Of a stretch of DNA of 64,000 bases, positions 16,601 through 60,495 are shown in pieces. Position 1 is the stretch's first letter. Each line of letters starts with the position of its first letter. The DNA lies in IMG/VR virus record IMGVR_UViG_3300021959_006017, positions 172,752 to 236,751 of that record. One strand, given 5' to 3'. Both the position numbers and the translations under genes were made by a program. Below the pieces are notes generated by a model that searched no databases, was not told where the DNA came from, and saw nothing but the letters and a program-made list of their open reading frames with translations.

Positions 16601-16948
16601 ATGACATATCTAGTTAATGACAACTGTATTAAATGTAAACACACAGATTGTGTCGAAGTTTGCCCAGTAGACTGTTTCTATGAAGGTGAAAACTTTTTAG
16701 CAATCAATCCTGACGAATGCATCGACTGCGGTGTATGTGAACCTGAATGCCCAGCAAACGCAATCATACCTGACAATGCTATTGAAGGGGCTGAACTTGA
16801 AAAATGGATGGATATCAATACTAAGTACAGTCAAATCTGGCCAAATATTACACAAAAGAAAGACCCATTACCAGATCACGAACAGTGGGACGGTGTACCT
16901 AACAAATATGAAGAACACTTTTCAGAGGAGCCCGGTACAGGTGATTAA
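16601..16948 (+). CDS. fdxA: 7Fe ferredoxin (FdxA type)
   Basis: [21 protein letters not shown]...[12 protein letters not shown]. Confidence 0.93.
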
Positions 16949-20704: not shown

Positions 20705-21562
20705 ATGGCAAAAGAACATTTCAAATTTAATTTTGAACCTTGGATGGCTGAAGAGTTAATCCATCGTGACGATTGGGAAGACTGGTACGAAGCAATGTGC
20801 GAGATTCTTCCACTATGGGAAGTAGACACTATTGAACGTGTAGCAATGTTTGTTGCACAGTGTGGTCATGAAAGCGGCGGCTTCCGAGTACTAAGTGAAA
20901 ATCTTAACTATAGTGCAAAAGCTCTAAACACTATCTTCCCTAAGTACTTTAAAAGAGCAGGAAGGGATGCCAATGAGTATCACAGACAGCCTGAAAAAAT
21001 TGCGAACGTTATTTACGCAAATAGAATGGACAATGGCGACACCGATTCCGGTGACGGTTGGATGTTTAGAGGTGGCGGTATTCTACAACTTACCGGACGC
21101 TATAACTACACCAAGTTTGGCGAAGCAGTCGAAATGTCAGCAGAAGAAGCAGTCGACTACGTCAGAACGAAAAAAGGCGCACTAGATAGTGCTTGCTGGT
21201 TCTGGGATAGCAACAATATTAACCGTTGGTGCGATGATATGGATGTTGTTGGTGCAACAAAACGCATTAATGGTGGTACTATTGGTTTAGATGATCGTAA
21301 AAAGCATTACCTACATGCAATGGATGTACTAGGTGGCGATTATGAAGAGCCTGAAGAACAAGAACTTAATCTTAATCAAACTATACGCAAAGGCAGCAGA
21401 GGACCACTAGTTGCAGAAGTACAAGAAAAACTTGATATTTCTCCAGCAGACGGTATCTTTGGTCCAGGCACAGAGCGCATTGTAAAAGAATGGCAAAGTG
21501 CAAACGGATTAACAGCTGATGGCATAGTAGGACCCAAGACATTGGGAAAATTACTGGGGTAG
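20705..21562 (+). CDS. Endolysin: GH19 domain plus C-terminal peptidoglycan-binding domain
   Basis: AQCGHESGG, ENLNYS, FRGGGILQLTGRYNY, RINGG; DGIFGPGT/DGIVGPKT. Confidence 0.92.
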   Translation: MAKEHFKFNFEPWMAEELIHRDDWEDWYEAMCEILPLWEVDTIERVAMFVAQCGHESGGFRVLSENLNYSAKALNTIFPKYFKRAGRDANEYHRQPEKIANVIYANRMDNGDTDSGDGWMFRGGGILQLTGRYNYTKFGEAVEMSAEEAVDYVRTKKGALDSACWFWDSNNINRWCDDMDVVGATKRINGGTIGLDDRKKHYLHAMDVLGGDYEEPEEQELNLNQTIRKGSRGPLVAEVQEKLDISPADGIFGPGTERIVKEWQSANGLTADGIVGPKTLGKLLG

Positions 21563-21567
21563 GTGGT

Positions 21568-22065
21568 ATGGGTGCCAAGTTAGCAATCGTTTTTTTCTTT
21601 TTAATGACTGGAATGGCAGGCGCAGGGTATCTCTATTATCAAGATACTCAGGAGCGTATACAAATTCTTACGGAAAATAATGCTAAGTTGGAGACAGCCG
21701 TACAAACTAACGAAGAAGCTCTAGCAACACAACAGGCTTCATTTAAAGCAATGCAAGCAGAAAACAGTAGATTGCAAACTGAATTCCAAGCAATCAATGA
21801 TCGTAATAGAGCTTTAGAAAATAGATTGTCGCGACACGATATAGGTGCCGCGGCAGTAGCTAAACCAGGGCTAACAGAACGTGTACTAAACGGTGCAACT
21901 AGAAATGCACAACGTTGTTTAGAAATACTAAGTGGGGCAGACCTGACAGAAGCAGAACTGTCAGCAACAAAGCCAAGCGAGATAAATCCAGAGTGCTGGA
22001 GAGATGCAAATCCAAACTTTGATCCAAATATTCAATCAGATGCTTGGAAAAGGAAGAATCTATGA
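21568..22065 (+). CDS. Inner-membrane spanin (Rz-like)
   Basis: N-terminal TM helix plus long coiled coil; directly follows the endolysin. Confidence 0.7.
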   Translation: MGAKLAIVFFFLMTGMAGAGYLYYQDTQERIQILTENNAKLETAVQTNEEALATQQASFKAMQAENSRLQTEFQAINDRNRALENRLSRHDIGAAAVAKPGLTERVLNGATRNAQRCLEILSGADLTEAELSATKPSEINPECWRDANPNFDPNIQSDAWKRKNL

Positions 22066-22517
22066 AGACACTAGTTGTAGCATTGCTCGGACTTACACTG
22101 TTAGTTGGTTGTACTACACAACCTCAACGTATTGAAATAAGTGCAAAACCTATTGACAAACCTCAACTTATATTACCTCCGGTAGAACCGTTGAGACTAA
22201 AAGATGTTGAGTGGGTCATTATTACAGAAGAAAACGCACAAGAAGTTTTCGAACAATTACTAAAAGACAGAAAAGATCCTATGCTCATAGGACTTACAGA
22301 TGATGGGTATGAAATTCTATCACTTAATATGAGTGATATAATGAAACTGATTGCACAACAAAGGCAAATAATTGCTGCCTATCGCAACTACTACGAAGAA
22401 TCTGAGCAAGCACTTGATGATGCAAATGCAAATATAGAAGGTGCTCAAGCAGAAGTAGAAGCACAAAATAATAAACCAACTGAATCTATCCTCGGAAATC
22501 TTAATCCTTTCAAATAA
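22062..22517 (+). CDS. Outer-membrane lipoprotein spanin (Rz1-like)
   Basis: Signal peptide with lipobox LVGC, then a Pro-rich segment. Confidence 0.7.
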   Translation: MKTLVVALLGLTLLVGCTTQPQRIEISAKPIDKPQLILPPVEPLRLKDVEWVIITEENAQEVFEQLLKDRKDPMLIGLTDDGYEILSLNMSDIMKLIAQQRQIIAAYRNYYEESEQALDDANANIEGAQAEVEAQNNKPTESILGNLNPFK

Positions 22518-22544
22518 ATACATATAGTAAAACGGAGGGTTACT

Positions 22545-22841
22545 ATGTGGGAAATGATACAAGAGATGGCAGGAGACCGTCTTTGGATTTATACTAGTAT
22601 TGCTGGTTCGCTATTAGGCGCAGCATTTTTATTCTGGTTTAAAGACACAAGAATGGCAACATGGGGCGTAACTAAATTTGACGCAACACTAGAGTATCTA
22701 GCAATACGCTGGGGTTGGACTTGGTTACAAAATGATCCAAATGCATGGCGTGTAAAGTATCCCAAAATAACTTCCAAAATTGATGAGCTCGAAGCTCGAT
22801 TAGAAAAATTGGAGGCCAAAAATGCCAAGAAAAAAACTTGA
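22545..22841 (+). CDS. Small membrane protein, holin/antiholin candidate
   Basis: N-terminal TM helix; late octamer AATAAATA at 22513; lysis context. Confidence 0.5.
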   Translation: MWEMIQEMAGDRLWIYTSIAGSLLGAAFLFWFKDTRMATWGVTKFDATLEYLAIRWGWTWLQNDPNAWRVKYPKITSKIDELEARLEKLEAKNAKKKT

Positions 22842-23244
22842 AGATTTAGATACTAAACCAGCAGCGAAGCCAGCAGCGGCGCCAGCGCCAACAAGGACAG
22901 AACCTATGAAGTACGAAGAACAAAAATATGAAGCAGAAGTAGTTTCAAGTAGCGATTCAACAACACGTAAAGTAAAACTTGATCTAGAAGTAGATACAAG
23001 TGTTAAAGACTTAGGTCCAAATCCTTATGCTAAAATTATTCATCTAGCAAAAGCAGTAGATGCTTGGAGGATCTTCCCACGTTTGTTCTTAACAGTTTAT
23101 ATTATACTACTTTACAAAACTGTTATATGGTACATGGAACTTCCTGCACCAAGCATGGAACAAAGTGGATTAATTTCAGTTGTAGTAGGTGCGGGTGCAG
23201 CATGGTTTGGCTTGTACACCGGATCTAGCAAAAAGGACAAATAA
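22822..23244 (+). CDS. Two-TM membrane protein, holin candidate
   Basis: DAWRIFPR plus two TM helices and a basic C-terminus. Confidence 0.5.
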   Translation: MPRKKLEDLDTKPAAKPAAAPAPTRTEPMKYEEQKYEAEVVSSSDSTTRKVKLDLEVDTSVKDLGPNPYAKIIHLAKAVDAWRIFPRLFLTVYIILLYKTVIWYMELPAPSMEQSGLISVVVGAGAAWFGLYTGSSKKDK

Positions 23245-23259: not shown

Positions 23260-24066
23260 ATGGACTTATATACAGTATTGGGCATCCCACGAACAGCATC
23301 TCCAGATGAAATAAAAAAGGCGTATAAGAAACAAGCCATGCGACACCATCCTGACAGAGGTGGTAATCCTGATGAGTTTCGTAAAGTGACTGAAGCATAT
23401 GACGTTCTAAGTAACAGTGATAAAAAGGCAGCATACGACAATCCACAACCAGGATTTAGTTTTAGATCACAGGACTTTGCACAAGGAAATCCTTTCGAAG
23501 GTACACCTTTTGAAAGTATATTTAGGCAAAGGCAAACACCTCGTAATAGAGATGTTCAAATGCCTGTTAATGTTACACTAAGAGATATTGTAACAGGGAA
23601 TCGAGTTGCTATAAACTACCAACTTAGTACAGGTAGAATCGAAACTGTAACTATTGATATTCCACCTGGTGCAAAACACGGTGATCAAATACGTTACGAA
23701 GGATTAGGCGATGAAGGCAATAAAAATTATCCTAGAGGAAACTTAATAGTTCAAATAAGAGTTCGAAAACATCGAGATTGGGCTAGAGATGGAGATAACT
23801 TAACTACAAAAAAATCTGTAAATTTGTTTGACTTTTTAACAGGAGGTGTTATAATAGTTAATACAATAGATGAAAAAAGTGTTAAACTTAACATACCACC
23901 AGGCACTAAACCAGGCACAACATTTAGTATATCAGGATATGGCATTCCTAATATTAACACAAGAAAACCTGGTAACTTATACGTCAAACTTGAAGCAGAA
24001 ATGCCAAAGATAAAAGATGCAAAGTTACTTGAAGAAATAGAAGATTTAAAAAGGAAAATAGGGTAA
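23260..24066 (+). CDS. dnaJ: DnaJ-class co-chaperone (CbpA-like, no Zn finger)
   Basis: J-domain with HPD; C-terminal substrate-binding domain. Confidence 0.9.
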   Translation: MDLYTVLGIPRTASPDEIKKAYKKQAMRHHPDRGGNPDEFRKVTEAYDVLSNSDKKAAYDNPQPGFSFRSQDFAQGNPFEGTPFESIFRQRQTPRNRDVQMPVNVTLRDIVTGNRVAINYQLSTGRIETVTIDIPPGAKHGDQIRYEGLGDEGNKNYPRGNLIVQIRVRKHRDWARDGDNLTTKKSVNLFDFLTGGVIIVNTIDEKSVKLNIPPGTKPGTTFSISGYGIPNINTRKPGNLYVKLEAEMPKIKDAKLLEEIEDLKRKIG

Positions 24067-24070
24067 AATA

Positions 24071-26320
24071 ATGGTAGAACCATCAAAGGATTTACAACTG
24101 GTTTTTGACAAAGCTATCAAAGATGCACAGAAGTTGCGTCACGAATATGTTACACTTGAACATATGATGTTTGCTATGATGTGTGAAGATAACTTTGTTA
24201 AGTTATTAGAAATGTATGGTGCAGATATTGATTATATCAAAGCCAACCTCGAACATCATTTAAAAACAAACAGCGATGATATTATTCTCCCCGAGGATAT
24301 TAAAAAATACAAGCCAAAGAAAACACAGGGTGTAGAACGTGCTTTGAATAGAGCATTTACACAGGTTCTTTTTGCAGGGCGTAGCCATATTGAGTTAAAA
24401 GATCTTTTGCTTAGTATTCTACATGAGAAGAAAAGTATTAGTGCTTACATCTTAGAAAAAGGTGGCGTTGGAAAAGATAAATTCAGTGACTTTGTAAACA
24501 ACGAAGTAGATGAAACACTACTGGAAGATCCTGAACTAACTAACGAAATGCGTAGAGCTATTAAGAGCTTTACAACTAACTTAAACGATCAAGTAAAACG
24601 TGGCAAGGTTGATCCTATTATTGGACGGGCTGACGAACTAGAAAGCCTTTGTTTGGCATTAGGTCGTCGAAGCAAAAATAATGTGCTAATGGTAGGTGAT
24701 CCGGGTGTTGGTAAAACTGCTATTGCAGAAGGACTTGCGTTTAATATCGAACAAGGTAATGTTCCAAGTTTCCTCAAAGAGTATAAAGTCTACAATCTAG
24801 ACATTGGTGCTATGCTTGCTGGTTCAAAATACCGCGGTGACTTTGAAGAACGTTTTAAACTTGTACTAAACGGACTTATCCGTGAAGGCAAGACTATTAT
24901 GTTTATCGACGAAGCACATATGATGAATGGTGCAGGTGCAGGCGGCAGTGGCAACTCAAACGATCTTGCTAATATGCTCAAGCCGGCACTAGCAAAAGGT
25001 GATCTAAAAGTTGTTGCTTCGACTACTTGGGAAGAGTTCCGCAAGTACTTTGAAAAAGATCGTGCGCTGATGCGTCGATTCCAGCGTGTAACTATTGGGG
25101 AACCTTCAAAAGAAACAACATCAGACATTCTAAGAGGTTTACGCAAGTACTATGAAGACTACCATGGAACAACTATTACTGATGACGCTATTGATGCGGC
25201 TATTAAACTAAGCGTTAAGTACCAAAGCGATAAGAAACTGCCAGACAAGGCTATTGACTTGATCGATGTTGCTTGTGCTAGATTTAAAGTTAACGATGAC
25301 GAAAACGAAGAAAAAACTGTAACTGAAGATAGTATCTTTTTTGAGCTTTCAAAAATGCTAAACTTGCCTACAGAACAAGTAGCACAGCGTGAATCAGAAA
25401 ACCTACAACATCTTGAAGACAATCTCAAGAAAGTTGTGTATGGACAAGACGATGCTATTGAAAGTATTGTTGATAAGATTCTTGTTAGCCAAGCAGGACT
25501 TAAACCAGATGATAAACCAGTAGGTGCATTTGTGTTTATGGGTCCAACAGGCACAGGTAAAACTGAAACTGCTAAACAGCTTGCAAATCAACTGGGTGTT
25601 AAACTTGTACGATTTGATATGAGTGAATACATGGAGAAACATAGTGTTGCAAAACTTATTGGCTCACCTCCAGGTTATGTAGGACACGAAGAAAACGCAG
25701 GTCAGTTGATTACTAAACTACAAGAGTCTCCTAACTGTGTACTCCTATTGGATGAGATCGAAAAAGCACACCCTGATGTTGCGCAGATTCTACTACAGAT
25801 TATGGACAACGGCTTGGTTACAGGCTCAAACGGTAAGGAAGCAGATGCACGTAACTGTACACTTATCCTTACAACTAACCTAGGTGCAGCACAAGCTGAA
25901 AAAGGTAGCATTGGTTTTGGTGATGACGAAGACTTTGGTTACGAAGATACAGAGTTTAAAAAGTATTTTGCTCCAGAGTTCCGCAATAGACTTGACGGTG
26001 TTATTACGTTTGCTAAACTTGGCAAAGAAGTAATGATGAAGATTGTTGGCAAGTTCCTTGTTGAACTTAAAGATATGGTCAAAGACAAAGGTATTGCTAT
26101 CGAAGTAACAGATGACGCACTTGACTATTTGGTAGACAAAGGTTTTGATCCTAAAAACGGTGCTCGTCCGCTACAACGTGTGATTGACAAAGACATTAAA
26201 CGTCCTCTTTCAAGACAGATGTTATTTGGTGATCTAAAAAATGGTGGCAAAGTAACAATCGATGTTAAAGATGACGAAGTAGTTCTTTCTGTAGAGGAAC
26301 TTGCAGTTGAAATATTATAA
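24071..26320 (+). CDS. clpA: ClpA AAA+ unfoldase
   Basis: Clp N domain; two AAA modules (GDPGVGKT, GPTGTGKT); IGF loop; no ClpB middle domain. Confidence 0.92.
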   Translation: MVEPSKDLQLVFDKAIKDAQKLRHEYVTLEHMMFAMMCEDNFVKLLEMYGADIDYIKANLEHHLKTNSDDIILPEDIKKYKPKKTQGVERALNRAFTQVLFAGRSHIELKDLLLSILHEKKSISAYILEKGGVGKDKFSDFVNNEVDETLLEDPELTNEMRRAIKSFTTNLNDQVKRGKVDPIIGRADELESLCLALGRRSKNNVLMVGDPGVGKTAIAEGLAFNIEQGNVPSFLKEYKVYNLDIGAMLAGSKYRGDFEERFKLVLNGLIREGKTIMFIDEAHMMNGAGAGGSGNSNDLANMLKPALAKGDLKVVASTTWEEFRKYFEKDRALMRRFQRVTIGEPSKETTSDILRGLRKYYEDYHGTTITDDAIDAAIKLSVKYQSDKKLPDKAIDLIDVACARFKVNDDENEEKTVTEDSIFFELSKMLNLPTEQVAQRESENLQHLEDNLKKVVYGQDDAIESIVDKILVSQAGLKPDDKPVGAFVFMGPTGTGKTETAKQLANQLGVKLVRFDMSEYMEKHSVAKLIGSPPGYVGHEENAGQLITKLQESPNCVLLLDEIEKAHPDVAQILLQIMDNGLVTGSNGKEADARNCTLILTTNLGAAQAEKGSIGFGDDEDFGYEDTEFKKYFAPEFRNRLDGVITFAKLGKEVMMKIVGKFLVELKDMVKDKGIAIEVTDDALDYLVDKGFDPKNGARPLQRVIDKDIKRPLSRQMLFGDLKNGGKVTIDVKDDEVVLSVEELAVEIL

Positions 26321-27005
26321 AACACAAAAACTTTTCTACGGCAAGTACTTGTATAAGGTTTACTTTTACAACGAACTAAATGGCTTCTTTAGAACAGAGT
26401 TCCAGAAAAAAGGAACTCTGAGCTATGCTAGAGAAAAAATAGATCAACTTACAGAATACTATAGACAGGGAATGCCTATGCAAACACCTATCTATAGAAC
26501 ATTTAAACATATTGATGAAGAAACTTATTTAGATGCACGGTTTTTATACGCTACGCTAATACGAAGCAAAGAAGAATACCGTGTTAGAGTTGAAAGTTGC
26601 AACAGAATAAGTATTTTTTCAAACGATGAAAAGTTCATTGACAAGACCGCCAACGGTGTAAGGACTCGATTAGTAGAAGTTCATAAACCTGATGATGTTG
26701 TTAAAGATGAAATACTTGCAAATAAAAACATTATTGTATCACCTAACCCAGTATATTGGCCTATTAAAGTAACACTAGGTAAAAACCGTAGAGATTACAG
26801 TGGTTTGGCTAACTGGATTGAAGCAAATCCAGACAAAGTAAAAATAGGCGAAGTTGCATTAAAATCGTTAAAATCACATGGCTTTGTAAGTGGCTACTAT
26901 TTGTTTGTAAAAACTGACAAAATATTAAATCTTATCAATATAATGATAGGCGATAATATACGCCGTATAGATCAGATTGTTTATAAAGCAGATTTAGATA
27001 AATAG
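26301..27005 (+). CDS. Hypothetical protein
   Basis: 234-aa ORF; start uncertain. Confidence 0.6.
   Translation: MQLKYYKTQKLFYGKYLYKVYFYNELNGFFRTEFQKKGTLSYAREKIDQLTEYYRQGMPMQTPIYRTFKHIDEETYLDARFLYATLIRSKEEYRVRVESCNRISIFSNDEKFIDKTANGVRTRLVEVHKPDDVVKDEILANKNIIVSPNPVYWPIKVTLGKNRRDYSGLANWIEANPDKVKIGEVALKSLKSHGFVSGYYLFVKTDKILNLINIMIGDNIRRIDQIVYKADLDK
26997..27004 (+). promoter_or_regulatory. Late-type promoter GATAAATA, 5 nt before ATG
   Basis: GATAAATA-GTTAT-ATG; heads the 27-35 kb cluster. Confidence 0.6.
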
Positions 27006-27009
27006 TTAT

Positions 27010-27378
27010 ATGCCGAGTAATAGTGAAACAATATTAACACAAAACGTACATCCAGGAGATAGTCAAACAGAAACTATCACAGGAGATGCAGCCAAGGGCG
27101 ATGGATATTATGGACGTTCCGACGGGTTCCATACAGTTCAGTATGATCTAGATAACTTTCTAGGAACTGTTATTGTCCAAGGCACATTGGCAACTACCCC
27201 TACAGCAGATGATTGGTTTGATATAACTGATACCGAACACGTAAGCACATCAAATGACAGTTCAAGTTCAACTAGTGATGGTGGATTTGTTTACAACTTT
27301 ACCGGTAACTACGTATGGGTAAGGGTATATGTTGAGTATACAGACGGCGCAGTAAACTCAGTAAAGCTAAATCACTAA
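27010..27378 (+). CDS. Hypothetical beta-rich (virion?) protein
   Basis: GDGYYGRSDGFHTVQY...NFTGNYVWVR. Confidence 0.6.
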   Translation: MPSNSETILTQNVHPGDSQTETITGDAAKGDGYYGRSDGFHTVQYDLDNFLGTVIVQGTLATTPTADDWFDITDTEHVSTSNDSSSSTSDGGFVYNFTGNYVWVRVYVEYTDGAVNSVKLNH

Positions 27379-27387
27379 GGACACATA

Positions 27388-27957
27388 ATGGAACACTTTG
27401 TAAACATAGTAATGGAAAAGAATGATAACCTAACTGAAAGCCTAGATGAAAGTATCTTTCCAGGCAATATTGTTACAGAATCAGAACAAGGTGCTACTGT
27501 TATTCAAATACCTTTGCCTCGTCATCTAAGCGAACAAGAATCAGATGAATATGCTAACAGACTAGCAAACTATATGTTTGAAAATGGCTATGACGATTTT
27601 GACATTGAAATAAGTTCAGATGAAGAACTTGATGAAATAGAAGAAACATATGACAGTGATGAGTTTTTTGAAAACTATGGTGTTATGTGGTTCAACGAAG
27701 ATGATGAAATGGACGAGGCAGAATATCAAGGACGTAAAGTTAAGCTAGGCAAGCCAATGCGTGGCGATGTTAAAAAGTTTAAAGTATACGTTAAGGATCC
27801 AAAGACTAAGAACGTTAAAAAAGTAAACTTTGGCGATCCTGACATGAAGATTAAAAAATCAAATCCGGCACGTAGACGTTCATTCCGTGCTAGACACAAC
27901 TGTGATAACCCAGGTCCACGTACTAAGGCACGTTACTGGTCATGTAGGAAATGGTAA
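27388..27957 (+). CDS. Acidic leader plus basic C-terminal module (putative internal head protein)
   Basis: Acidic half ends MDE|AEYQGRKVKL...RRSFRARHNC...YWSCRKW. Confidence 0.65.
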   Translation: MEHFVNIVMEKNDNLTESLDESIFPGNIVTESEQGATVIQIPLPRHLSEQESDEYANRLANYMFENGYDDFDIEISSDEELDEIEETYDSDEFFENYGVMWFNEDDEMDEAEYQGRKVKLGKPMRGDVKKFKVYVKDPKTKNVKKVNFGDPDMKIKKSNPARRRSFRARHNCDNPGPRTKARYWSCRKW

Positions 27958-27958
27958 T

Positions 27959-28285
27959 ATGCGTATTGACGAGTTTGCACCACGAGTAGATAATAGCTTA
28001 CCCTATGATGTAGTAGACGATGTAAAATCATATATGATAAACGATAAGGATTTTTATCGTAGATCTCTATATCCAGCAATGTGTAAGTTACAAGATCAAA
28101 TGAAAAGTGGAAAAATGTCACCACTTACACTTGCTCCTGTAATAGATAAAGCATGTGCAGGATATTGTTCAAAGTTTAATATTCCAAAAGAACCTAAAGA
28201 CCTGTTGGATAAGTCAGAAAAAGTAGAACTTATGCAGCGTCTTATAGCAGATGAAAGAGAGAACTTAGAAAAAGGAGAGTTTTGA
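27959..28285 (+). CDS. Hypothetical protein (MRIDEF start)
   Basis: Start reassigned to ATG 27959 after the upstream stop. Confidence 0.6.
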   Translation: MRIDEFAPRVDNSLPYDVVDDVKSYMINDKDFYRRSLYPAMCKLQDQMKSGKMSPLTLAPVIDKACAGYCSKFNIPKEPKDLLDKSEKVELMQRLIADERENLEKGEF

Positions 28286-29271
28286 TGCTCCTTAGACAAC
28301 TCTTCGAAGAAAAAGCTCGTAAAGTAGTAGCAGTTATGCCAGGTGGGTTTCATCCATTTCATCCTGGACATAAAAGTTTATATGATTGGGCAGTCAAAAC
28401 ATTCGGACAAAGCAATGTTTACGTGGCAGCAACTAATGACACTGCTACAAGACCTTTCCCATTTGAAGTTAAGAAGAAACTAGCAGCAATGGCTGGTGTT
28501 CCTGAAAGCAACTTTATGCAAGTTAAATCCCCATTTAATAATAGAGAGTATGCCGGCCTTGTAGATGCAGACACTGCCTTAGTATTTGTACGCAGTCAAA
28601 AAGATAAATCAGAACAACCTTTGCCAGATCAAACTAAGAAGAATGGCGAGCCAGGTTACTTGCGTACTTACACAGGCAAAGACCTAAACACTTCAGATGA
28701 AATGGGCTATATGGCATACGGTCCTACTATTAACTTTGACTTTAGTGGTATGCAGATAAAGAGTGCAAGTGAACTTAGAGCCACTTGGCCTGAAATGTCA
28801 GATGATGATAAACTAAAGGCTGCACAACTAATGTACGGAAATGGTGCAGAAGCAGCAGTACAACTTCTAAACAAAGCATTAGGCGATACAGAAGCACCAG
28901 TAGGCGAAAGTGAAGTAGTACTAGACAAAACTAGTTTACGTGGATATATTCGTGATATGATTATAGATCATATTAACCAAGTCGACGATATTAAAAAACT
29001 GTCAGAAATATTATACAATCTAGTAGGCAAGCAAGTTAAGCACCGCGGACAAAGATTTACTGTTACTGATGAAGATATTACAGAAATACTAGGCTTTGCT
29101 ACTAAACGTCCTAAGCAAGCAACAAAAACAGTAAAGCGTAGACCGCCTGAAGAAGATAGTGTACAAGATAAGTTAGCCAAGCGTAGAAAACTAGCAAGTA
29201 GAGTAGGCGTAGATAAAGCATTTACAAGCAAAAGTGTTGATAAAGATTTAAACAAATATTTTGGAAAGTAA
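28285..29271 (+). CDS. HxGH nucleotidyltransferase domain plus C-terminal modules
   Basis: MLLRQLFEE leader; PGGFHPFHPGH and SASELR motifs. Confidence 0.75.
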   Translation: MLLRQLFEEKARKVVAVMPGGFHPFHPGHKSLYDWAVKTFGQSNVYVAATNDTATRPFPFEVKKKLAAMAGVPESNFMQVKSPFNNREYAGLVDADTALVFVRSQKDKSEQPLPDQTKKNGEPGYLRTYTGKDLNTSDEMGYMAYGPTINFDFSGMQIKSASELRATWPEMSDDDKLKAAQLMYGNGAEAAVQLLNKALGDTEAPVGESEVVLDKTSLRGYIRDMIIDHINQVDDIKKLSEILYNLVGKQVKHRGQRFTVTDEDITEILGFATKRPKQATKTVKRRPPEEDSVQDKLAKRRKLASRVGVDKAFTSKSVDKDLNKYFGK

Positions 29272-29272
29272 A

Positions 29273-29494
29273 ATGGATGAGCTAGAATATATTAAAAAAC
29301 TAGCTGGTGTAAATGAGTTTAAAGGTTACACAGAATATCAAATAGACGAAAACCCTAGCATTACTGCCACAGCAATCAAACAAAAAGAACGAGAAATGGG
29401 AGTTAAGCCAGGCGATCAAGAATGGTTTAAACTTTGGTTCTCTAAACCTTATATGACCGGTGTTCCAAATTTTAGAGGACGCAAGAAAAAATGA
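29273..29494 (+). CDS. Hypothetical protein (KKLAGV motif)
   Basis: MDELEYIKKLAGVNE...PGDQEWFKLWFS. Confidence 0.6.
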   Translation: MDELEYIKKLAGVNEFKGYTEYQIDENPSITATAIKQKEREMGVKPGDQEWFKLWFSKPYMTGVPNFRGRKKK

Positions 29495-30198
29495 AAATAA
29501 CTGACTTGCTGGAAGATGGACGTATTGTTAAAGGTGTTAATACTACAGTTGATGTAGGTGTTAATCAGATTCCTATCGAAGCAAATAAGTTTGGCAACAA
29601 AGTAGACAAAGACGGGCGGCCGCCCACCCTAAGCAAAAAAGTCAAAGGCTCTAGTACAAATGTACTGTTTAATCTAGGACTTGCAGAAGGCTACAAACTA
29701 CAACTAGAGCGTGACAAGCAAATGCTTGTTCTAAATATTAAGAATACAAAAACAGGTCAACGCACAGAAGTCCGTGGTAAACCGGGTTACGAAAGTGGTA
29801 ACTACGATCCAACTGACGATTTACATCAACTATTAGACACACTAGGTAAAAGTGTTGATATTTCACAACTGATGAATGGAGAACCTGTAGGTATACGTCC
29901 TGATCATCCCGATGGAAAGAAAGCAAAAGCAGCTACTCACAGAGCATTTAGTAAAATGGAACTTGCATACATGGAGGGTGGACATAGTCTAGATGATTTA
30001 GACAAGCCTACTCCTAGTGTTGCAGACATCGCTAAAATGCACGATGTTAGTGTAAGTCATATTGTACGTCAACTTGAAAAAGGCATTGAAGCAGAATACG
30101 AACACACATCAGACTTTGATCTTGCAAAAGAAATAGCACTTGATCATCTAGCAGAAGATCCTGACTACTACTTTAAACTTGGGATATTAGAGCTATGA
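29491..30198 (+). CDS. Modular putative internal head protein
   Basis: MKITDLLE leader; C-terminal module GIEAEYEHT...IALDHLAEDPDYY. Confidence 0.65.
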   Translation: MKITDLLEDGRIVKGVNTTVDVGVNQIPIEANKFGNKVDKDGRPPTLSKKVKGSSTNVLFNLGLAEGYKLQLERDKQMLVLNIKNTKTGQRTEVRGKPGYESGNYDPTDDLHQLLDTLGKSVDISQLMNGEPVGIRPDHPDGKKAKAATHRAFSKMELAYMEGGHSLDDLDKPTPSVADIAKMHDVSVSHIVRQLEKGIEAEYEHTSDFDLAKEIALDHLAEDPDYYFKLGILEL

Positions 30199-31463
30199 GA
30201 TGGTCAGAAGTTACAGAAAAGTGGTCACAGAAATACAAGCGTAGTATTAACTGTTCAAATCCAAAAGGATTTAGTCAAAAAGCTCATTGTGCTGGACGCA
30301 AGAAAACAAATGAAGCATTTGTTAAGCCACAGTTTGATGTAGAATGGGACGAAGCGGCTCGCTATCCAGAGTTTCAAAAGATTGGCAAAGAAGCGTGGAT
30401 TGAACTTGCTAAAACTGGTAAGGCTATAACTATTAAAAGTGCTAAGGGTATTGAGAACACAGATGCCGCAGATCCAGATAGTTTTAAAAGTTTAGATCCA
30501 GCAAAGCAGAAAAGAGCGTTAGCACAACTAGAAAAAGGTTCGGTTGAAATGCCTATTGTTGCTGTTTACAGTGACGGATACAAAGAACTTGTAGGCGGTA
30601 ATACAAGACTTACTGCTATGATGGCACAAAACGGCAAAGCAACTGTGTGGGCATTTAAAGTGCCAGACGAAGTTGCCGAACTAGCTGAAAACTTTGCTGA
30701 TGGTAAAAGTAAAGCAAAGCGTAGACAAATGGATGAAAAAACATACCATGAGTCATTAGAAGAAGCACTAGGTGAAATTGCTCCTAATACAGAAATATAT
30801 GTTGATATGGATGGCGTACTTGCTGACTTTTTTGGCGAATGGTCAAAGTCGCAAGGTGTTGATAACTGGAAAGACATCAAAGATCCTGCAAAAGCAATTG
30901 GTGATATTAAAAGCATAGAAGACTTTTGGTTAAACTTACCAATACTACCTAAAGCAAAAGAATTACTAGGACTAATAAAACAAGTTAAAGGCAAGTATAA
31001 GATATGTACAAGTCCATTGGCAGACGATCCACGTAGTGAACCACACAAACGTGAGTGGGTAAAGAAGAATTTATCGTTTTTCCCACCAGAAGAAGTCATT
31101 GTTACACATAACAAGCCGCAGTTTGCAAAACAAAAAGACGGTACTCCTAACATACTAATAGATGACTATGGTGTTAATATAAACGCTTGGGAAGAAGCAG
31201 GCGGCATAGGATTTAAATACAAAGACTATAAGTTTAATAGAACAGCAAAGGCAATAAAAAATAGAATAGAAGATCCTGTAGAAGAAAACTTTGCTGACGG
31301 TAAGAAAAAAGGAAAGAGCCGCCCAGGGCGTGTAAAACGTGCTGGTGCAAGTTGTAATGGCAGTGTAACTGCACTCCGCAAACGAGCAAAAAATAGCTCC
31401 GGAGAAAAAAGGAGGATGTATCATTGGTGCGCAAACATGAAATCGGGAAGGAAGAAAAAATAG
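30195..31463 (+). CDS. Modular polyprotein: basic peptide, ParB/Srx-like domain, 5'(3')-deoxyribonucleotidase-like HAD domain, basic peptide
   Basis: MRWSEVTE leader; PIV...LVGGNTRL; YVDMDGVLADF...ILIDDYGVN; two ENFADGK linkers. Confidence 0.75.
   Translation: MRWSEVTEKWSQKYKRSINCSNPKGFSQKAHCAGRKKTNEAFVKPQFDVEWDEAARYPEFQKIGKEAWIELAKTGKAITIKSAKGIENTDAADPDSFKSLDPAKQKRALAQLEKGSVEMPIVAVYSDGYKELVGGNTRLTAMMAQNGKATVWAFKVPDEVAELAENFADGKSKAKRRQMDEKTYHESLEEALGEIAPNTEIYVDMDGVLADFFGEWSKSQGVDNWKDIKDPAKAIGDIKSIEDFWLNLPILPKAKELLGLIKQVKGKYKICTSPLADDPRSEPHKREWVKKNLSFFPPEEVIVTHNKPQFAKQKDGTPNILIDDYGVNINAWEEAGGIGFKYKDYKFNRTAKAIKNRIEDPVEENFADGKKKGKSRPGRVKRAGASCNGSVTALRKRAKNSSGEKRRMYHWCANMKSGRKKK
30687..31303 (+). 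repeat. 20-bp near-perfect direct repeat flanking the HAD domain
   Basis: GAAAACTTTGCTGATGGTAA (30687) and GAAAACTTTGCTGACGGTAA (31284). Confidence 0.85.
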
Positions 31464-31660
31464 TAGAACTATATCCAGACGGATATAGCAGAAAATGGAG
31501 AGAATATGAAAGTGTTCCTGTAGAACACTATATCGCCAAACACAAAGAACACGAAGCACGAAGAGCAAGTTTTAATGAACGTGCAGAGTACTGGAAAACA
31601 TACAAAAAATATTTAAAAAATACTAATCCCGAAACTGGTTTTAACATGAATGACTTCTAA
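31424..31660 (+). CDS. Hypothetical protein
   Basis: Fills the gap between genes; start uncertain. Confidence 0.45.
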   Translation: MVRKHEIGKEEKIVELYPDGYSRKWREYESVPVEHYIAKHKEHEARRASFNERAEYWKTYKKYLKNTNPETGFNMNDF

Positions 31661-31672
31661 GGTAAATACAAT

Positions 31673-32020
31673 ATGAAGATGAAAGAACTATTAACAGAAG
31701 AAGAGTTTAAGGATGTACATAGTAGTACACTTCCTCATGCAAGTTATTATCCGGAAATGCCTGCAAGTAGTCCTTACTACGCATACCGTTTCGGAATGGG
31801 CATGGCGGATCATACTACTTTTCATCCCAACGGACCATCAAAAAACTCAGCAGTTATAGTTCAGTATTCAAAAGGGGAAGAAGAAATAGTCGCCGCAACA
31901 GAAAAGAAACTAGGAAAGTTTGGTAAAAAGACCTTAGCAGATGGTGGAAGTAACGAACCAGAAGGCACAAACAAAACCAGTCCTGTTGCAAAGAAAAAGA
32001 AAAACAAATACGGTGTATAA
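31673..32020 (+). CDS. Putative internal head protein
   Basis: MKMKELLTEE leader; YYAYRFG; basic KKKKNKYGV end. Confidence 0.6.
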   Translation: MKMKELLTEEEFKDVHSSTLPHASYYPEMPASSPYYAYRFGMGMADHTTFHPNGPSKNSAVIVQYSKGEEEIVAATEKKLGKFGKKTLADGGSNEPEGTNKTSPVAKKKKNKYGV

Positions 32021-32022
32021 CT

Positions 32023-32364
32023 ATGAGATTTCGTGAACTAATAAAAGAAGAAGGATATGACACACAACGTGATGCAGATGCTGTAAGTGGTAAGCCTCGT
32101 AAAACATCTGTAGGTGGTGGCAAAAAGCCTAAAGGTTATAGCAAAGACAAAGCAGAGAAAGCCGCTATGGATAATGTTAAAAAAGCCTTAGCAAAAGAAT
32201 CAGCAACAGGTATGGGTGCAGCAAGTATTGCTACAGCAGTAGGAAATGTAGGCCCAACTATCAGTAGAAACATGTATAACGACGATGGCACTATGAAAAA
32301 CGGCGTTGACTTTGATAATCTAATGGGTGGCAAAAAGAAATCAAAGAAGCGTAAAAAGGCATAA
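32023..32364 (+). CDS. Putative internal head protein
   Basis: MRFRELIKEE leader; LAKE|SATG junction. Confidence 0.6.
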   Translation: MRFRELIKEEGYDTQRDADAVSGKPRKTSVGGGKKPKGYSKDKAEKAAMDNVKKALAKESATGMGAASIATAVGNVGPTISRNMYNDDGTMKNGVDFDNLMGGKKKSKKRKKA

Positions 32365-32367
32365 ATA
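32360..32367 (+). promoter_or_regulatory. Late-type promoter CATAAATA
   Basis: Octamer overlapping the stop codon. Confidence 0.55.
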
Positions 32368-32395
32368 CTATATAATGCGCATTACGGAGTAATCA

Positions 32396-33145
32396 ATGAG
32401 AGAAAAAGATTTAAAAGAAGGTTTAGGCGATCTAGCTCATAAAGCAGAAAAAGACCATGAAGTACAAATGGCTCGTGCTGACCTATACAAACTAGCAAAG
32501 TATGCTATCAAGTTACACGATATGCTCAAGCAAGTACCTGAAGAAGCAGGACTAGAAGGTTGGGTACAATCAAAAATCACAAAAGCAGCTGATTACATTG
32601 GCAGTGTTTATCACCATCTTGATTACGAAGAAGCAACAGGCGAACTAGGTGAAAGCGCAGTAAAAGAAGCAAGTTGCGGATGCGATGAAAATAGCTGTTC
32701 ACACTGCAAAGGTAAGCACACACTAGACGAAGTAGGTCAAAAGTGTGAGTGCTGTGGCAATATGATTAAAGAAGTAACTGCTGAAGGCAAGTTCAAATCA
32801 GATGCACAACGTAAAGCTATTCATGCAGCAAAAGCAAGTGGCAAGCGTAGCAAAAAGAAACTCCGTGACCACAGTGACTTATCAGATAGACTAGCAGCAA
32901 AACTCGAATCAAAAAAAAAGGTAGCTGAACGCAGTCTTTCCAAAGGCGAAGAAAAAGACAAAGAAAAGTACGTCAAAGGCATGAAAAAAGCCAAAGGCGA
33001 CTTTAAAGATCGCTACGGCAAAGATGCAGAAGCAGTTATGTATGCAACTGCTACCAAAATGGCTAAAGAGGCAACTAAGATTACACCAAAACAAATCAAA
33101 GCAGATAAAATAAAATCTCAAAAGATTACAGCAAAGACGGAGTAA
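32396..33145 (+). CDS. Modular putative internal head protein with Cys-rich (Zn?) module
   Basis: MREKDLKE leader; LEGWVQSKITKAADY; CGC..CSHC..CECC. Confidence 0.65.
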   Translation: MREKDLKEGLGDLAHKAEKDHEVQMARADLYKLAKYAIKLHDMLKQVPEEAGLEGWVQSKITKAADYIGSVYHHLDYEEATGELGESAVKEASCGCDENSCSHCKGKHTLDEVGQKCECCGNMIKEVTAEGKFKSDAQRKAIHAAKASGKRSKKKLRDHSDLSDRLAAKLESKKKVAERSLSKGEEKDKEKYVKGMKKAKGDFKDRYGKDAEAVMYATATKMAKEATKITPKQIKADKIKSQKITAKTE

Positions 33146-33148
33146 CAC

Positions 33149-33457
33149 ATGTCAGAGTCATTTAAAGCACTTATGCAAAAGATTGCAGAAATAGAAGAAC
33201 GCAAAGAAGACGACAAAGACGGAGATTTAAAAGGCTTTGACAGTCGTACAATGCGAGCATTAACTCGTATTAAGGCACAGTATCCAAATGCTCCAAACGA
33301 CCTTGCAGCACTTCTACGCCATGTAACTAACGTTGATAAAGACAGTGATACTAATGACGATGAACATATTAGCAGAATCAAAAAACTAGAAGATAAAGTA
33401 GAAGAACTAGAAAAGAAACTTACACTATTGTTAAGGAAAAAAAGTAATGGACTTTAA
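33149..33457 (+). CDS. Hypothetical coiled-coil protein
   Basis: 102-aa ORF within the cluster. Confidence 0.55.
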   Translation: MSESFKALMQKIAEIEERKEDDKDGDLKGFDSRTMRALTRIKAQYPNAPNDLAALLRHVTNVDKDSDTNDDEHISRIKKLEDKVEELEKKLTLLLRKKSNGL

Positions 33458-35003
33458 CGCACTACAACATAAACTTTTTGCACTAGATCCAAGCGATCTT
33501 GCAGCTGACAAACAAGCACTTATAGCACAAGCACAAGGAGCAGTTGTAGATACGCCAAAAGTAGATTATGTAACAGAAAGTACAGAAGTTCCAAAAGGCA
33601 GTATGCCTATTGATTTAGATCTAGCAGGACTTACAGCACTTGCAGGTGTAAGACTAGATGAAAAACAAAAGATGGGTAGTGCAGGACAAGCAAAAGGCAA
33701 AGACCCTATGCCAAAAGCAGAACCTGGACGTACAAAGCATCCATTAAAAGATAAACTTGTAGGCGAAGCAGAAACCTCAACAGGTTTTGAACCTCAAGGA
33801 TTCAAAGCAGCATTTAAAAACTATAATAAAGTTGATCCGTGGTTAGGTACTAGTACTGACGATGATGGTAAAAAGAAAGACGAACCAAAAACTCCACCTA
33901 AAAAAGGTGAAAAGCCAGCACCAGGACCAACACCAGGACCAACTCCAAAACCTACTCCAAGTCCGTGGCCTACAAGTAAAGAAGGTTATACACTAAAAGT
34001 AGGAGACTTAGTCACTTACGCAAACAAAAAAGGACAAACACGAGAAGATGTTCCAGTTGTTAAACTTTTAAAAGGAACAAAAGACGGTAAAGGTCGTCCA
34101 CAGATACAGCTACAACTACGTGGTGCAACTTATGCTATTAGTAGAGAACAAATACAAAAAGTAAATGGTAAAACATTTACACTAGATGATGCTGAAGCAG
34201 GTACAGGTACACTAAAAGACCAACTGTTACAAGCTCTAGAAGCGTACAAGCAAAAGCCACAGATTAAACCACGTGATCCAAATGCACAAGCAATGAATGA
34301 CTTGCGCAGAAGTGGTGCAATGGGTGCGCACAAAGACAAAAAGCGTGATGCTAAGATGGGCAAAGTTAAGCACAAAGGCAAGATAGACGAAAGCAAAATG
34401 TCGTTTAACGACATGATGAAAAACAGAGAGTTTTATTACACATATAAACAATATGTAAGTGGTAACGCTAATGTAGATCAAGTGGCTGAGTTAGTAAGAG
34501 GCCGTGTTGATAAAGAAAAGTTTGCTGACGAAATACATAGAAAAGGTGTTGAGTACGGTGGCGCAAAAGGTAAACGAATCAAAGATCTTGCAGATATTAT
34601 AAGAAAAGATTCTAACGTGCTTGATTTACCAGGAAAAGCATTTAGTAAGATTAAAAAAATGGTAGGTATGGGCGAAGGTATGGACGAATCTTATACTAAA
34701 GTAGATGGTATGGAAGCTGAAGAACTACGCAAACAGTATGCCAAAGACTGGGAAATACGTAAAGGCAAGTATCTTTATAAAAAAGTAGCCTTTGACGACT
34801 ACAACACTGTACTACGTTTCTTAATGGTTATCGAAAAACCACAGATTGAACTAGATCATTTTGCAAATATTAAGTTCTTTTACAATGAAGCAGAGCTTGT
34901 TGTATACACACACGACACAAAAGGTCTTACAACACTTGACTTTAAACTTGCTGTGCAAATAGATCGTGCGTTAGATCGAATGGGAGCGAAAGAGATAGGA
35001 TGA
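33447..35003 (+). CDS. Modular polyprotein ending in a pterin-4a-carbinolamine dehydratase-like domain
   Basis: LAGVRLDE, LVGE, IDE, MDE junctions; Pro/Thr linker; C-terminal W...LDHFANI...YTHDTKGLTTLDFKLA..ID. Confidence 0.7.
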   Translation: MDFNALQHKLFALDPSDLAADKQALIAQAQGAVVDTPKVDYVTESTEVPKGSMPIDLDLAGLTALAGVRLDEKQKMGSAGQAKGKDPMPKAEPGRTKHPLKDKLVGEAETSTGFEPQGFKAAFKNYNKVDPWLGTSTDDDGKKKDEPKTPPKKGEKPAPGPTPGPTPKPTPSPWPTSKEGYTLKVGDLVTYANKKGQTREDVPVVKLLKGTKDGKGRPQIQLQLRGATYAISREQIQKVNGKTFTLDDAEAGTGTLKDQLLQALEAYKQKPQIKPRDPNAQAMNDLRRSGAMGAHKDKKRDAKMGKVKHKGKIDESKMSFNDMMKNREFYYTYKQYVSGNANVDQVAELVRGRVDKEKFADEIHRKGVEYGGAKGKRIKDLADIIRKDSNVLDLPGKAFSKIKKMVGMGEGMDESYTKVDGMEAEELRKQYAKDWEIRKGKYLYKKVAFDDYNTVLRFLMVIEKPQIELDHFANIKFFYNEAELVVYTHDTKGLTTLDFKLAVQIDRALDRMGAKEIG

Positions 35004-35638
35004 GACTTCAGGACTTATATCCTAAGTTCAATCCAGACCCTTACTTACGCAAACCAATAGCACGACATCAAGTAGAAAATCTTCCATTTAAAGACTTTGA
35101 TAAGGACGGATATGAAGTTCCGACTCCTTTAGAGTGGTTACACTACGAAGCAAACAATATTAATCTTAATAGAGAAATACAATACCATATTGCACCTGTA
35201 CAAGAATGGTATACAGACGTAGAACAAAGTGAACACGGGCTTGTGCTAGATCATTGTATGCTATTAACACGTTATGCGTTCGCAGGTGAAGCAAGAGAAC
35301 AAATCATAGAAGTTTCAAAAAACAGACCAATCTTACAAAAACTGTTAAATATCAAACCCAAGTGGGGTATAGACTTTAGTCTTGATTATGTAACACACGA
35401 TATTGTTATGGAAGTGATACATATAGAACAAGACTTTGATGATATTAACGAAGCAGAGCAAGCAAAGGCAAAACTTGAATACATTATTGATTCAACAGAT
35501 TGGTATGATGGAGCAATGCGTTTATGGCAACGCAAAGACGAATGGATCAACCTTTCTTCAGACGATCATTCGGACTATAAAGCACAGTTCTTTGGCTGGC
35601 ATCGTGCTTTTGACAACAAAAAAGTATTTTCTACTTGA
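35000..35638 (+). CDS. Hypothetical protein
   Basis: FDKDGYE, KPKWGIDFSLDY; ATGA coupling. Confidence 0.65.
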   Translation: MRLQDLYPKFNPDPYLRKPIARHQVENLPFKDFDKDGYEVPTPLEWLHYEANNINLNREIQYHIAPVQEWYTDVEQSEHGLVLDHCMLLTRYAFAGEAREQIIEVSKNRPILQKLLNIKPKWGIDFSLDYVTHDIVMEVIHIEQDFDDINEAEQAKAKLEYIIDSTDWYDGAMRLWQRKDEWINLSSDDHSDYKAQFFGWHRAFDNKKVFST

Positions 35639-35688: not shown

Positions 35689-35949
35689 ATGAGTGACCGT
35701 ACCTATGGTGCTGAAGAAAAAGCAAAACTAGAACGTCTAGTACGTGAAGGTGTAACTGTTATGCAGGAAGTTGAAGATCTGCAAACAGGTCTTAAAGAAA
35801 CTGTAAAAGCAGTTGCCGAAGAGCTTGATATTAAACCAGCACTTATTAACAAAGCGATTAAGATCGCAAAGAATCGTGATTGGGACACACACGCTGACGC
35901 ACACGAAGATTTAGAAACACTTATAGCAACACTAGGCTATGACAAATAA
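35689..35949 (+). CDS. Small dsDNA-binding protein (T4 DsbA/GapR-like)
   Basis: 86-aa helical protein, LKETVKAVAEELDIKPALINKAIKIA; SD GGAGG. Confidence 0.55.
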   Translation: MSDRTYGAEEKAKLERLVREGVTVMQEVEDLQTGLKETVKAVAEELDIKPALINKAIKIAKNRDWDTHADAHEDLETLIATLGYDK

Positions 35950-36230
35950 TGCAAAAAGTAAAAGACTTTTGGGTAAACAGCTATCGTAGTGATAAAACTG
36001 CATTTTGTTTTGAACTAATCAGTTTTATATTTACTGTAGGCGCAAGCATGACTCTTGCTATAAATGCAGATGATCCAAATATGCTTGTTGTTTATCCAGG
36101 ATTCTTTGTAGGAAGTGTAACACAAGTATATGCAAGTTGGCGTAGAGGAGCAGCATGGATTATGCTCCTCACATCATATTTTGCTTGTATAAATGTATTC
36201 GGATTTGGAGTGGCAGCAGGATGGTGGTAA
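35949..36230 (+). CDS. Small membrane protein
   Basis: About 3 TM helices. Confidence 0.6.
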   Translation: MQKVKDFWVNSYRSDKTAFCFELISFIFTVGASMTLAINADDPNMLVVYPGFFVGSVTQVYASWRRGAAWIMLLTSYFACINVFGFGVAAGWW

Positions 36231-57363: not shown

Positions 57364-57366
57364 GGG

Positions 57367-60494: not shown

Positions 60495-60495
60495 A

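Follow-up and report, generated by a model that had tools for sequence, protein, structure and literature searches.

We analyzed a 64,000-nucleotide stretch of DNA (hereafter the window), which forms the last 64 kb of a 236,751-bp IMG/VR viral contig (IMGVR_UViG_3300021959_006017, here G000; CheckV completeness 67%), and describe within it an island of about 9 kb, running from a ClpA gene to a DNA polymerase gene, in which shuffled protein modules, including a nucleotidyltransferase and a nucleotidase, stand behind a short recurrent N-terminal leader. Our best single reading, to which we give a probability of about 0.45, is that the island proteins would be packaged into the phage head via this leader, which resembles the capsid targeting sequence (CTS) of phage T4, trimmed by a Peptidase_S77 prohead protease, and ejected with the DNA. 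We favor this reading because the leaders end in L/I-x-E, relatives of the phage encode such a protease, and the leader matches the N-terminus of a protein of the head module.

Nearly all genes of the contig lie on the plus strand, and they include those for a contractile tail sheath and tube, large terminase, gp32-like single-stranded DNA-binding protein, UvsX, clamp loader, and family-B DNA polymerase. At 44-50% identity, the polymerase resembles its counterparts in Sinorhizobium phage Phosso, Agrobacterium phage Atu_ph07, Vibrio phage 2.275.O, and RaK2-like coliphages, and a related contig encodes a gp23-like capsid protein that shares 65-71% identity with those of Phosso, 2.275.O, and Serratia phage BF. 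Because both proteins match such phages, we assign the contig to an uncultured aquatic jumbo myovirus of the T4 superfamily, in a lineage that is kin to RaK2, BF, Vibrio phage 2.275.O, and Phosso. The source phage may fall in or near the "moraphages" described in 2025, which have ClpA, DnaJ, PhoH, and a prohead core protease in common (PMC12619734). Comparisons were made against 65 related viral loci or contigs; two related contigs are referred to below as G002 and G003, the latter a 236-kb relative with about 400 open reading frames (ORFs).

Four plus-strand genes with abutting or overlapping ends occupy positions 28285-31463 of the window, with the following features.

28285-29271, plus strand: modular protein of 328 residues (leader, HxGH nucleotidyltransferase, shuffled helical C-terminal part); ORF whose ATG start agrees with homologue P0001
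28285-28311, plus strand: leader MLLRQLFEE (h6-x-E8), from comparison with transferase relatives; predicted local distance difference test score (pLDDT) 63
28318-28899, plus strand: HxGH (cytidylyltransferase-like) nucleotidyltransferase domain; HxGH motif 28342-28371, SxSxxR motif 28762-28779
29273-29494, plus strand: small basic protein of 73 residues, isoelectric point (pI) 9.2, starting MDELEYIKKLAGVNE; ORF, syntenic in 53 of the 65 related loci
29491-30198, plus strand: modular protein of 235 residues (leader MKITDLLE at 29491-29514, GRIVKGVNTT module, middle module, DUF5661 at 30025-30186); PF18905 at 2e-13
30195-31463, plus strand: four-module protein of 422 residues behind leader MRWSEVTE (30195-30218); ORF, with homologues of permuted module order
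30222-30305, plus strand: basic two-Cys module WSQKYKRSINCSNPKGFSQKAHCAGRKK, common to cyanomyoviruses S-SM2, P-TIM68, S-SRM01, and Bellamy and mobile in homologues
30312-30704, plus strand: probable divergent ParB/sulfiredoxin (Srx)-like module with GGNTR at 30594-30608, from structure and profile comparisons
30687-30713, plus strand: second junction motif of the 422-residue fusion, ENFADGKSK
30786-31268, plus strand: NT5C-type HAD 5'(3')-(deoxy)nucleotidase domain; DMDGV 30804-30818, CTSPL 31005-31019, LIDDYG 31155-31172
31284-31460, plus strand: junction motif E|NFADGKKKGKSRPG, then a basic two-Cys helical tail (..YHWCANMKSGRKKK); pLDDT 90-96 over residues 377-417

A portable leader and the head machinery of related phages

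Most genes at 28285-33145 start with M-[KR]-[LI]-x-[ED]-[LI]-x-E, a tag of 8-10 residues (e.g., MLLRQLFEE, MKITDLLED, MRWSEVTEK, MKMKELLTEE, MRFRELIKEE, and MREKDLKEG). The consensus of this tag is M-[KR]-[LI]-R-[ED]-[LI]-[LFY]-E. Across the 65 related loci, this pattern begins 10.2% of ORF N-termini, compared with 0.19% per internal position (about 50-fold), and the modules behind it are unrelated. The window's contig has the loose pattern in 17 of its 308 ORFs and the strict pattern in six; five of these six, plus the transferase with its ATG start, lie at window 28.3-33.1 kb, a 5-kb stretch. Similarly, only five of the G003 ORFs are leader-tagged, four belonging to the island and the fifth to the head-tail module. 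A test independent of the search pattern came from transferase relatives gathered by their catalytic domain, which either begin at MKKIVIMPGGFHPFH or carry an extension of 9-13 residues (e.g., MFISELFEA.. and MRLRELFEA..); in 35/35 leader-bearing representatives, position 6 is aliphatic and position 8 is Glu. The leaders that the initial annotation had proposed are therefore real and non-random. In the structural models of both the 328- and the 422-residue proteins, the leader forms a short helix of low confidence that stands apart from the domain. Because it is optional in the transferase family, holds h6-x-E8 constant, and fronts unrelated modules, the leader is, on these comparisons, a portable, optional element under protein-level selection.

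In phage T4, the first 10 residues of internal protein (IP) III suffice for encapsidation, the gp21 prohead protease cuts after L/I-X-E, and the internal proteins are otherwise mutually unrelated, with only the CTS in common (PMC9026906; PMC3012670). The leaders of the window share length, position, and the L/I-x-E ending with the T4 CTS; read against the propeptide pattern (about 10 residues, L/I-x-E), their ends are MLLRQLFE|E, MKITDLLE|D, and MRWSEVTE|K. The related contigs G002 and G003, which both carry a 78%-identical transferase, encode a Peptidase_S77 prohead protease (E 1e-26), around which the head module is T4-ordered (portal, small protein, protease, scaffold, capsid protein). The N-terminus of the small protein encoded between these portal and protease genes reads MILRELYYFD in G003, MKLVELFEANTD in Vibrio phage 2.275.O, and MLDEIFEAKDD in Serratia phage BF; judged from these N-termini, the island leader is also found on a head-core component, whose role is marked by its gene position. 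Delivery at injection, as suggested in the initial annotation, is made plausible by the CTS-like leader, the Peptidase_S77 of the lineage, and this N-terminus shared with a head-module protein. In the relatives 121Q and phAPEC6, internal protein mass was detected by bubblegram imaging (PMC7247149).

Similar residues recur inside the proteins at the junction NFADGKKKGKSR, which precedes a recurrent basic tail and has Glu at position -1 in 98% and V/L/I/M at position -3 in 74% of 104 distinct contexts with differing preceding modules. This E|NFADGK pattern would fit internal processing of the island proteins as small polyproteins. We found no paper on the leader array or the NFADGK junction motif in the searchable literature.

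Separately, the scaffold proteins of related phages end in a motif of the form h-x-x-h-[KR]-x-[LI]-AG-[LIV] (..VDMKRLAGLN, ..LTKIAGIRK, and ..ISQLSGINKKR; loci L072 11822-12910, L086 10072-11169, and L089 5732-6856), and a 622-residue virion protein of the window's contig (G000 39732-41600) ends in a motif of this type (..EFDRMRELAGLR). The same type of motif stands near the N-terminus of two island proteins, at 29273-29494 and 33447-35003 (ELEYIKKLAGVNE and DLAGLTALAGV), and the KKLAGV of the 73-residue small basic protein resembles the scaffold C-terminal peptide of related phages; this motif could be a second capsid-binding peptide. A complex prediction for the G003 scaffold protein with the first 215 residues of its transferase scored 0.00, with no controls, and speaks neither for nor against binding.

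From the leader, the junctions, and the protease of the relatives, we infer the following route. The island supplies small "polyvalent-like" proteins built from shuffled modules, namely a virus-specific HxGH nucleotidyltransferase, a probable divergent ParB/Srx nucleoside triphosphate-binding fold, NT5C, DUF5661, a pterin dehydratase, and short basic two-Cys peptides. The leader would dock each protein on the prohead core, as the T4 CTS does, and the Peptidase_S77 prohead protease would clip it after Glu, while junctions of the form [VLI]-x-E|NFADGK, which separate modules, may be further sites for this protease. The resulting proteins, most of them basic, would then remain with the packaged DNA and enter the host at infection, where the ejected enzymes could act on nucleotides ahead of any phage gene expression. 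In a bolder version, which we regard only as a speculative and rather unlikely one, the genes would be combinatorial cargo cassettes, whose portable T4-like leader and cleavable [VLI]-x-E|NFADGK junctions would let polyproteins be loaded, cut in the prohead, and injected as a kit, with the virus-only HxGH nucleotidyltransferase, the ParB/Srx domain, and a deoxynucleoside monophosphate phosphatase among its parts, for editing the host's nucleotide pools or signals ahead of phage transcription.

A second group of leader-like N-termini was observed at G000 95921-102721 (L003): MRFTEFRTVLTE, MKINEVIARE, MDFIKDLHEA, MLLREFFIDE, MQLRELITEW, MKINEIIVET, and MHIREFTKP. One member of this group is a DUF6267 protein, and some ESM Atlas relatives fuse DUF6267 to the same transferase.

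Modules behind the leader

The HxGH nucleotidyltransferase domain recognized in the initial annotation is borne out by family, motif, and fold. Its motifs GGFHPFHPGH (residues 20-29) and SASELR (residues 160-165) are intact, and an alignment of 94 sequences shows H23, G28, H29, S160, and R165 to be invariant, along with positions peculiar to the clade (RPFPF, RSxKD, and Y125/Y145). The protein passes PF01467 marginally (21.6 bits; gathering cut-off 21) and falls slightly short of TIGR00125 (26.4; cut-off 27.7), and a model built from the alignment of the 94 relatives has a Rossmann-like alpha/beta phosphodiesterase fold with pLDDT >90 over residues 11-200. In both ESM Atlas and BFVD, all of its neighbors come from viruses; they are "cytidyltransferase-like" proteins, many with several domains. 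A 90%-clustered protein collection holds 3195 homologues, which are 80-93% identical over the N-terminal 210 residues and vary at the C-terminus, and the domain alone forms 1567 clusters at 50% identity. Given the motifs, the fold, the Pfam pass, and the viral-only neighbors, we conclude from these comparisons that gene 28285-29271 encodes a real HxGH nucleotidyltransferase of a virus-specific clade and that the enzyme is probably active. Identity of 80-90% across otherwise divergent contigs points to a strongly selected reaction. No paper on "cytitidyltransferase" or on this transferase clade was found in the searchable literature.

Placing the enzyme among the NMNAT and PPAT families gave a divided answer. 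Foldseek with the model returned NadD and NMNAT as top matches (E 3e-6 to 1e-4), whereas VIA-align put PPAT first, with PPAT, NMNAT, and NadD all within 1.2 Z units, so that the modeled fold matches the three equally well. Scores fell far below the cut-offs of the curated models for NMNAT/NadD (NF000843, 14.8 against 240; TIGR01527, 12.4 against 181) and for PPAT, i.e., CoaD (TIGR01510, 15.5 against 103; NF001985, 17.8 against 104), and the family profile gave only weak, motif-level matches to the PDB. The earlier caution that substrates cannot be read from the sequence was right. The same annotation had suggested counter-defense or nucleotide-pool effectors and pointed to phages that rebuild NAD+. 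The most concrete form of the counter-defense idea, an NMN/NaMN adenylyltransferase countering NAD+-depleting defenses, like the NARP2 Nmnat or the NARP3 NadR-like enzyme, would suit both the Foldseek ranking and the phages on record as rebuilding NAD+ (bioRxiv 10.1101/2024.02.11.579819; PMC13464706). Given the failed family cut-offs, the fold tie with PPAT, and the lack of a Nampt or PnuC partner in the contigs searched, this idea is left without support, and we consider it very improbable. No NAPRTase/Nampt-family gene was found in the window's contig and five related contigs (the related ones 38-77% complete; controls worked), nor a PnuC gene in five of these six (controls worked).

Directly after the island, at window 35949-36230, a 93-residue ORF with three predicted membrane helices and no family match may be the below-threshold candidate from the PnuC search, which is recorded without coordinates. 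Three more HxGH genes were noted in the contig, at window 40210-40629 (RfaE/TagD-like), G000 47400-48173, and G000 60299-60712 (weakly NMNAT-like).

The 422-residue fusion (30195-31463) has 5127 homologues of permuted module order in the 90%-clustered collection, and its AlphaFold model consists of distinct confident domains with disordered linkers between them. For the first large module, which the initial annotation had called ParB/Srx-like (GGNTR), agreement came at the level of fold and, weakly, of profiles. The ESM Atlas structure of the GGNTR stretch has a template-modeling (TM) score of 0.81 to a viral cluster auto-named ParB/Sulfiredoxin and of 0.45-0.52 to PF02195 clusters over 88-99 residues. 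By hhalign, the module aligns with the NGHHR module of homologues at 66% probability (E 5.5e-5), with GGNTR placed on NGHHR, and the NGHHR module as a profile matches SbnI, ParB nuclease, free serine kinase (SerK), ParB, and sulfiredoxin. GGNTR is invariant in 16 sequences, and the module has neither the Srx Cys nor the acidic residues of the ParB nuclease. Sequence matches were not obtained: residues 40-170 had no Pfam match at E 0.05, a sequence-profile search of the PDB gave chance matches alone (e.g., bilin-binding protein) and no ParB/Srx member, tblastn against isolated phages gave no match, and in a structure search with the whole 422-residue model HAD matches filled the list, leaving the ParB-like domain unmatched. 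Taking the fold and profile comparisons together, we rate a divergent ParB/Srx-like fold as probable for this module.

The nucleotidase domain, noted earlier from its DxDGV motif, is confirmed by PF06941 (31.5 bits; cut-off 24.8), by HAD motifs I-IV (DMDGV, CTSPL, K307, and LIDDYG), which are conserved in homologues, and by its nearest solved folds, which are deoxyribonucleotidases rather than generic HADs. On this basis, the assignment of 30786-31268 to an NT5C-type HAD (deoxy)nucleotidase is solid. A role in base replacement, i.e., removal of dTMP or dCMP, was considered and abandoned: the ThyA of this phage is a genuine thymidylate synthase, passing the equivalog cut-off, and it is accompanied by DHFR, both encoded at window 16731-18289 among the auxiliary genes.

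Short basic two-Cys modules lie at 30222-30305, 31329-31460, and 27700-27957 (WSxKYKxSIxCxNPKGFSQKAHC, ..YHWCANMKSGRKK, and a phrog_7595 tail) and are also found in marine cyanomyoviruses. In Prochlorococcus phage P-TIM68 (L002 3464-4585), a protein with one of these modules starts MMKSFIDFSE and directly follows the major capsid gene.

When homologues are mapped onto the window genes, the same modules appear in almost any order and combination. NT5C comes before or after the ParB-like module, or is joined to the N-terminal half of the neighbor gene or to the dehydratase described below, and the modules of the 235-residue DUF5661 protein are joined to NT5C or the transferase in varied order. 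Homologues also bring in GNAT, Cu/Zn superoxide dismutase, and sigma-70 region 4 modules. The claim that the putative cargo enzymes all act on nucleotides was thus too broad, given these modules, the DUF5661 domain between the transferase and the NT5C fusion, and the pterin-4a-carbinolamine dehydratase of gene 33447-35003. No paper on DUF5661 was found in the searchable literature.

Gene order and other possible roles for the leader

Other parts of the island are listed here in window coordinates.

23260-28285, plus strand: upstream part with DnaJ (23260-24066), ClpA (24071-26320), and four conserved small genes (26301-28285); synteny in 42-56 of the 65 related loci
31673-35638, plus strand: downstream part with leader-bearing basic proteins (MKMKELLTEE, MRFRELIKEE, and MREKDLKE) and a 518-residue dehydratase protein; ORFs, family matches, and synteny
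about 34713-34967, plus strand: pterin-4a-carbinolamine dehydratase (PF01329, 2e-14) at the C-terminus of the 518-residue protein (gene 33447-35003); profile match

Most of the 65 related contigs keep the order lysin, DnaJ, ClpA, four small genes, transferase, small protein, DUF5661 protein, NT5C fusion, further leader proteins, and DNA polymerase, and the same order is found in a more distant branch, in which the transferase is leaderless and fused to three GNAT domains. The 518-residue dehydratase protein has a Pro/Thr-rich linker, and homologues fuse the dehydratase to NT5C. Eight of ten measured island proteins have a pI of 9-10, in which they resemble the T4 internal proteins. In Phosso, the nearest isolate, the interval between ClpA and the polymerase contains ThyA, DHFR, and one leader-like basic protein, together with long unannotated proteins that look fiber-like by eye in their repetitive N-termini. 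A lysis cassette (20705-23244) immediately precedes DnaJ and shares its strand; an endolysin (phrog_181, 3e-70, C-terminal peptidoglycan-binding part) is followed there by ORFs for a transmembrane protein, a lipoprotein-like protein (MKTLVVALLGLTLLVGC), and two further membrane proteins. No convincing plus-strand terminator was found between this cassette and the island or inside the island. The position of the cassette and the content of the Phosso interval are mildly compatible with late expression.

Several observations weigh against packaging and ejection. In the window's contig (67% complete), there was no Pfam match to an S77 protease, gp23, or gp20, but the controls gave no match either, which makes this negative uninformative. 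The V at junction position -3 differs from the canonical L/I of T4. The island sits among replication and nucleotide genes (ThyA, DHFR, clamp loader, and PolB), outside the head module, and the DnaJ-ClpA pair always ahead of it suggests an alternative role for the N-terminal tag. NT5C nucleotidases (phrog_2643) are common cytoplasmic auxiliary genes of phages. The T4-type late promoter TATAAATA has nine plus-strand sites in the contig, none of them upstream of the island, and a scan for sigma-70-like promoters gave 59 sites against 49.9 expected, i.e., chance level. As one TATAAATA site precedes a likely ribonucleotide reductase gene (identified by its N-terminus only), we conclude that this motif does not mark late genes here.

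In another reading, the island would encode ordinary intracellular auxiliary enzymes that are made during infection, reshape nucleotide pools near the replication genes, and are never packaged, the leader being a conserved N-terminal helix with no targeting role. This main rival, which we regard as possible though clearly less probable than packaging, draws on the position of the island between ThyA/DHFR/clamp loader and the DNA polymerase, on the missing late promoter, on the filing of NT5C under auxiliary metabolic genes in PHROGs, and on the stand-alone related NT5C genes of many phages. However, a helix of purely structural use should not come and go among members of a single enzyme family, nor should it front unrelated modules or be confined to one island and a head-module protein, and the bona fide ThyA removes the classic reason, T/C replacement in DNA, for a phage deoxynucleoside monophosphate phosphatase.

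The leader might instead be a recognition tag for the phage's own DnaJ, ClpA, and ClpP, serving timed turnover or the folding and assembly of island proteins. Where a related locus extends far enough to reveal them, DnaJ and ClpA nearly always stand ahead of the island, the ClpA at 24071-26320 reaches a near-full score of 861 bits to TIGR02639, and the contig has a ClpP-like ORF at G000 146019-146633. ClpA reads N-terminal segments of its substrates, as in P1 RepA. Nevertheless, the same N-terminus occurs on the head-module protein of BF and 2.275.O, Phosso has DnaJ and ClpA yet only one leader-like gene found in the interval, and to our knowledge the leader motif does not fit the published N-motifs of ClpA/ClpX. 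We therefore consider such a tag improbable as the leader's role, although a chaperone function could coexist with packaging.

Elsewhere in the contig, KDO-8-phosphate synthase and CMP-KDO synthetase genes lie at G000 57083-58517, and a 433-residue ORF at window 58636-59937 matches phrog_1314 (HNH endonuclease) at 6e-112.

Comparison with known systems

Should the leader indeed target proteins to the capsid, it would make thousands of metagenomic proteins readable as injected cargo; this would provide a sequence rule for ejected effectors in uncultured jumbo phages and a first case of packaged nucleotide-metabolizing enzymes. Should it not do so, the island would still illustrate clearly how domains are shuffled among phage auxiliary genes and would offer a possible set of phage ClpA substrates.

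Among enzymes, the cyanomyovirus "cytitidyltransferase" genes, phrog_395, and phrog_3041 resemble the window's transferase in their HxGH fold and in being viral and often built of several domains, but identity is just 15-20%, and RPFPF, RSxKD, and Y125/Y145 are peculiar to the window's clade. NARP2 and NARP3 likewise use an HxGH adenylyltransferase, a superfamily to which the window's transferase belongs; unlike NARP1, NARP2, and NARP3, the window's system comes with no Nampt or PnuC partner found, leaves the family cut-offs unreached, and has a fold no nearer to NMNAT than to PPAT. The NT5C domain has the same fold, motif I (VDMDGVLADF), and DD motif as known NT5C enzymes (human cdN/mdN, S. 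epidermidis 3bwv, and phrog_2643), but in the window it is embedded in a leader-tagged fusion, beside a ParB/Srx-like domain and basic tails.

In architecture, the island recalls the polyvalent proteins (Iyer et al. 2017, PMC5512222), in which several conflict-type domains (ParB, GNAT, and others) share one polypeptide, their order varies, and entry into the host together with the DNA is predicted. Island proteins similarly have at least two unrelated conflict-type domains each, in an order that varies among relatives, and homologues of up to 1149 residues join the transferase to three GNAT domains and DUF5872, as in polyvalent architecture. They differ in being much smaller (2-4 modules), in having an N-terminal leader of their own, and in having no MuF, portal, zincin, or relaxase linkage; the genomic link of polyvalent proteins to packaging and transfer genes (MuF, portal, and type IV secretion system) was not seen here, the island lying between ClpA and DNA polymerase in most related loci. 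Neither the HxGH transferase nor NT5C turned up among keyword hits in the text of that study (PMC5512222).

As possible head cargo, the island proteins have counterparts in the inner-body and ejection proteins of phiKZ, 201phi2-1, and SPN3US, jumbo phages in which many packaged proteins are trimmed after Glu by a gp21-like protease, although those phages belong to another lineage, show no homology to the island, and use the cleavage motif S/A-X-E. In working principle, IPI, IPII, IPIII, and Alt of T4 come closest, along with the polyvalent proteins: in the island as in T4, tandem genes encode diverse, mostly basic (putative) cargo that shares only a tag, a gp21-type protease occurs in the lineage, and some of the cargo is enzymatic, as is Alt in T4. 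The island proteins differ from the T4 internal proteins in having no sequence homology to them and in their multi-module shuffled domains with possible internal cleavage junctions; the predicted targets of the island enzymes are nucleotides, compared with proteins in the T4 case. The known kind to which the island would belong is thus the tag-directed loading of diverse proteins into a T4-type head, and what would be new is that, in a lineage of uncultured jumbo phages, the cargo is modular, carries protease junctions, and has nucleotide enzymes among it.

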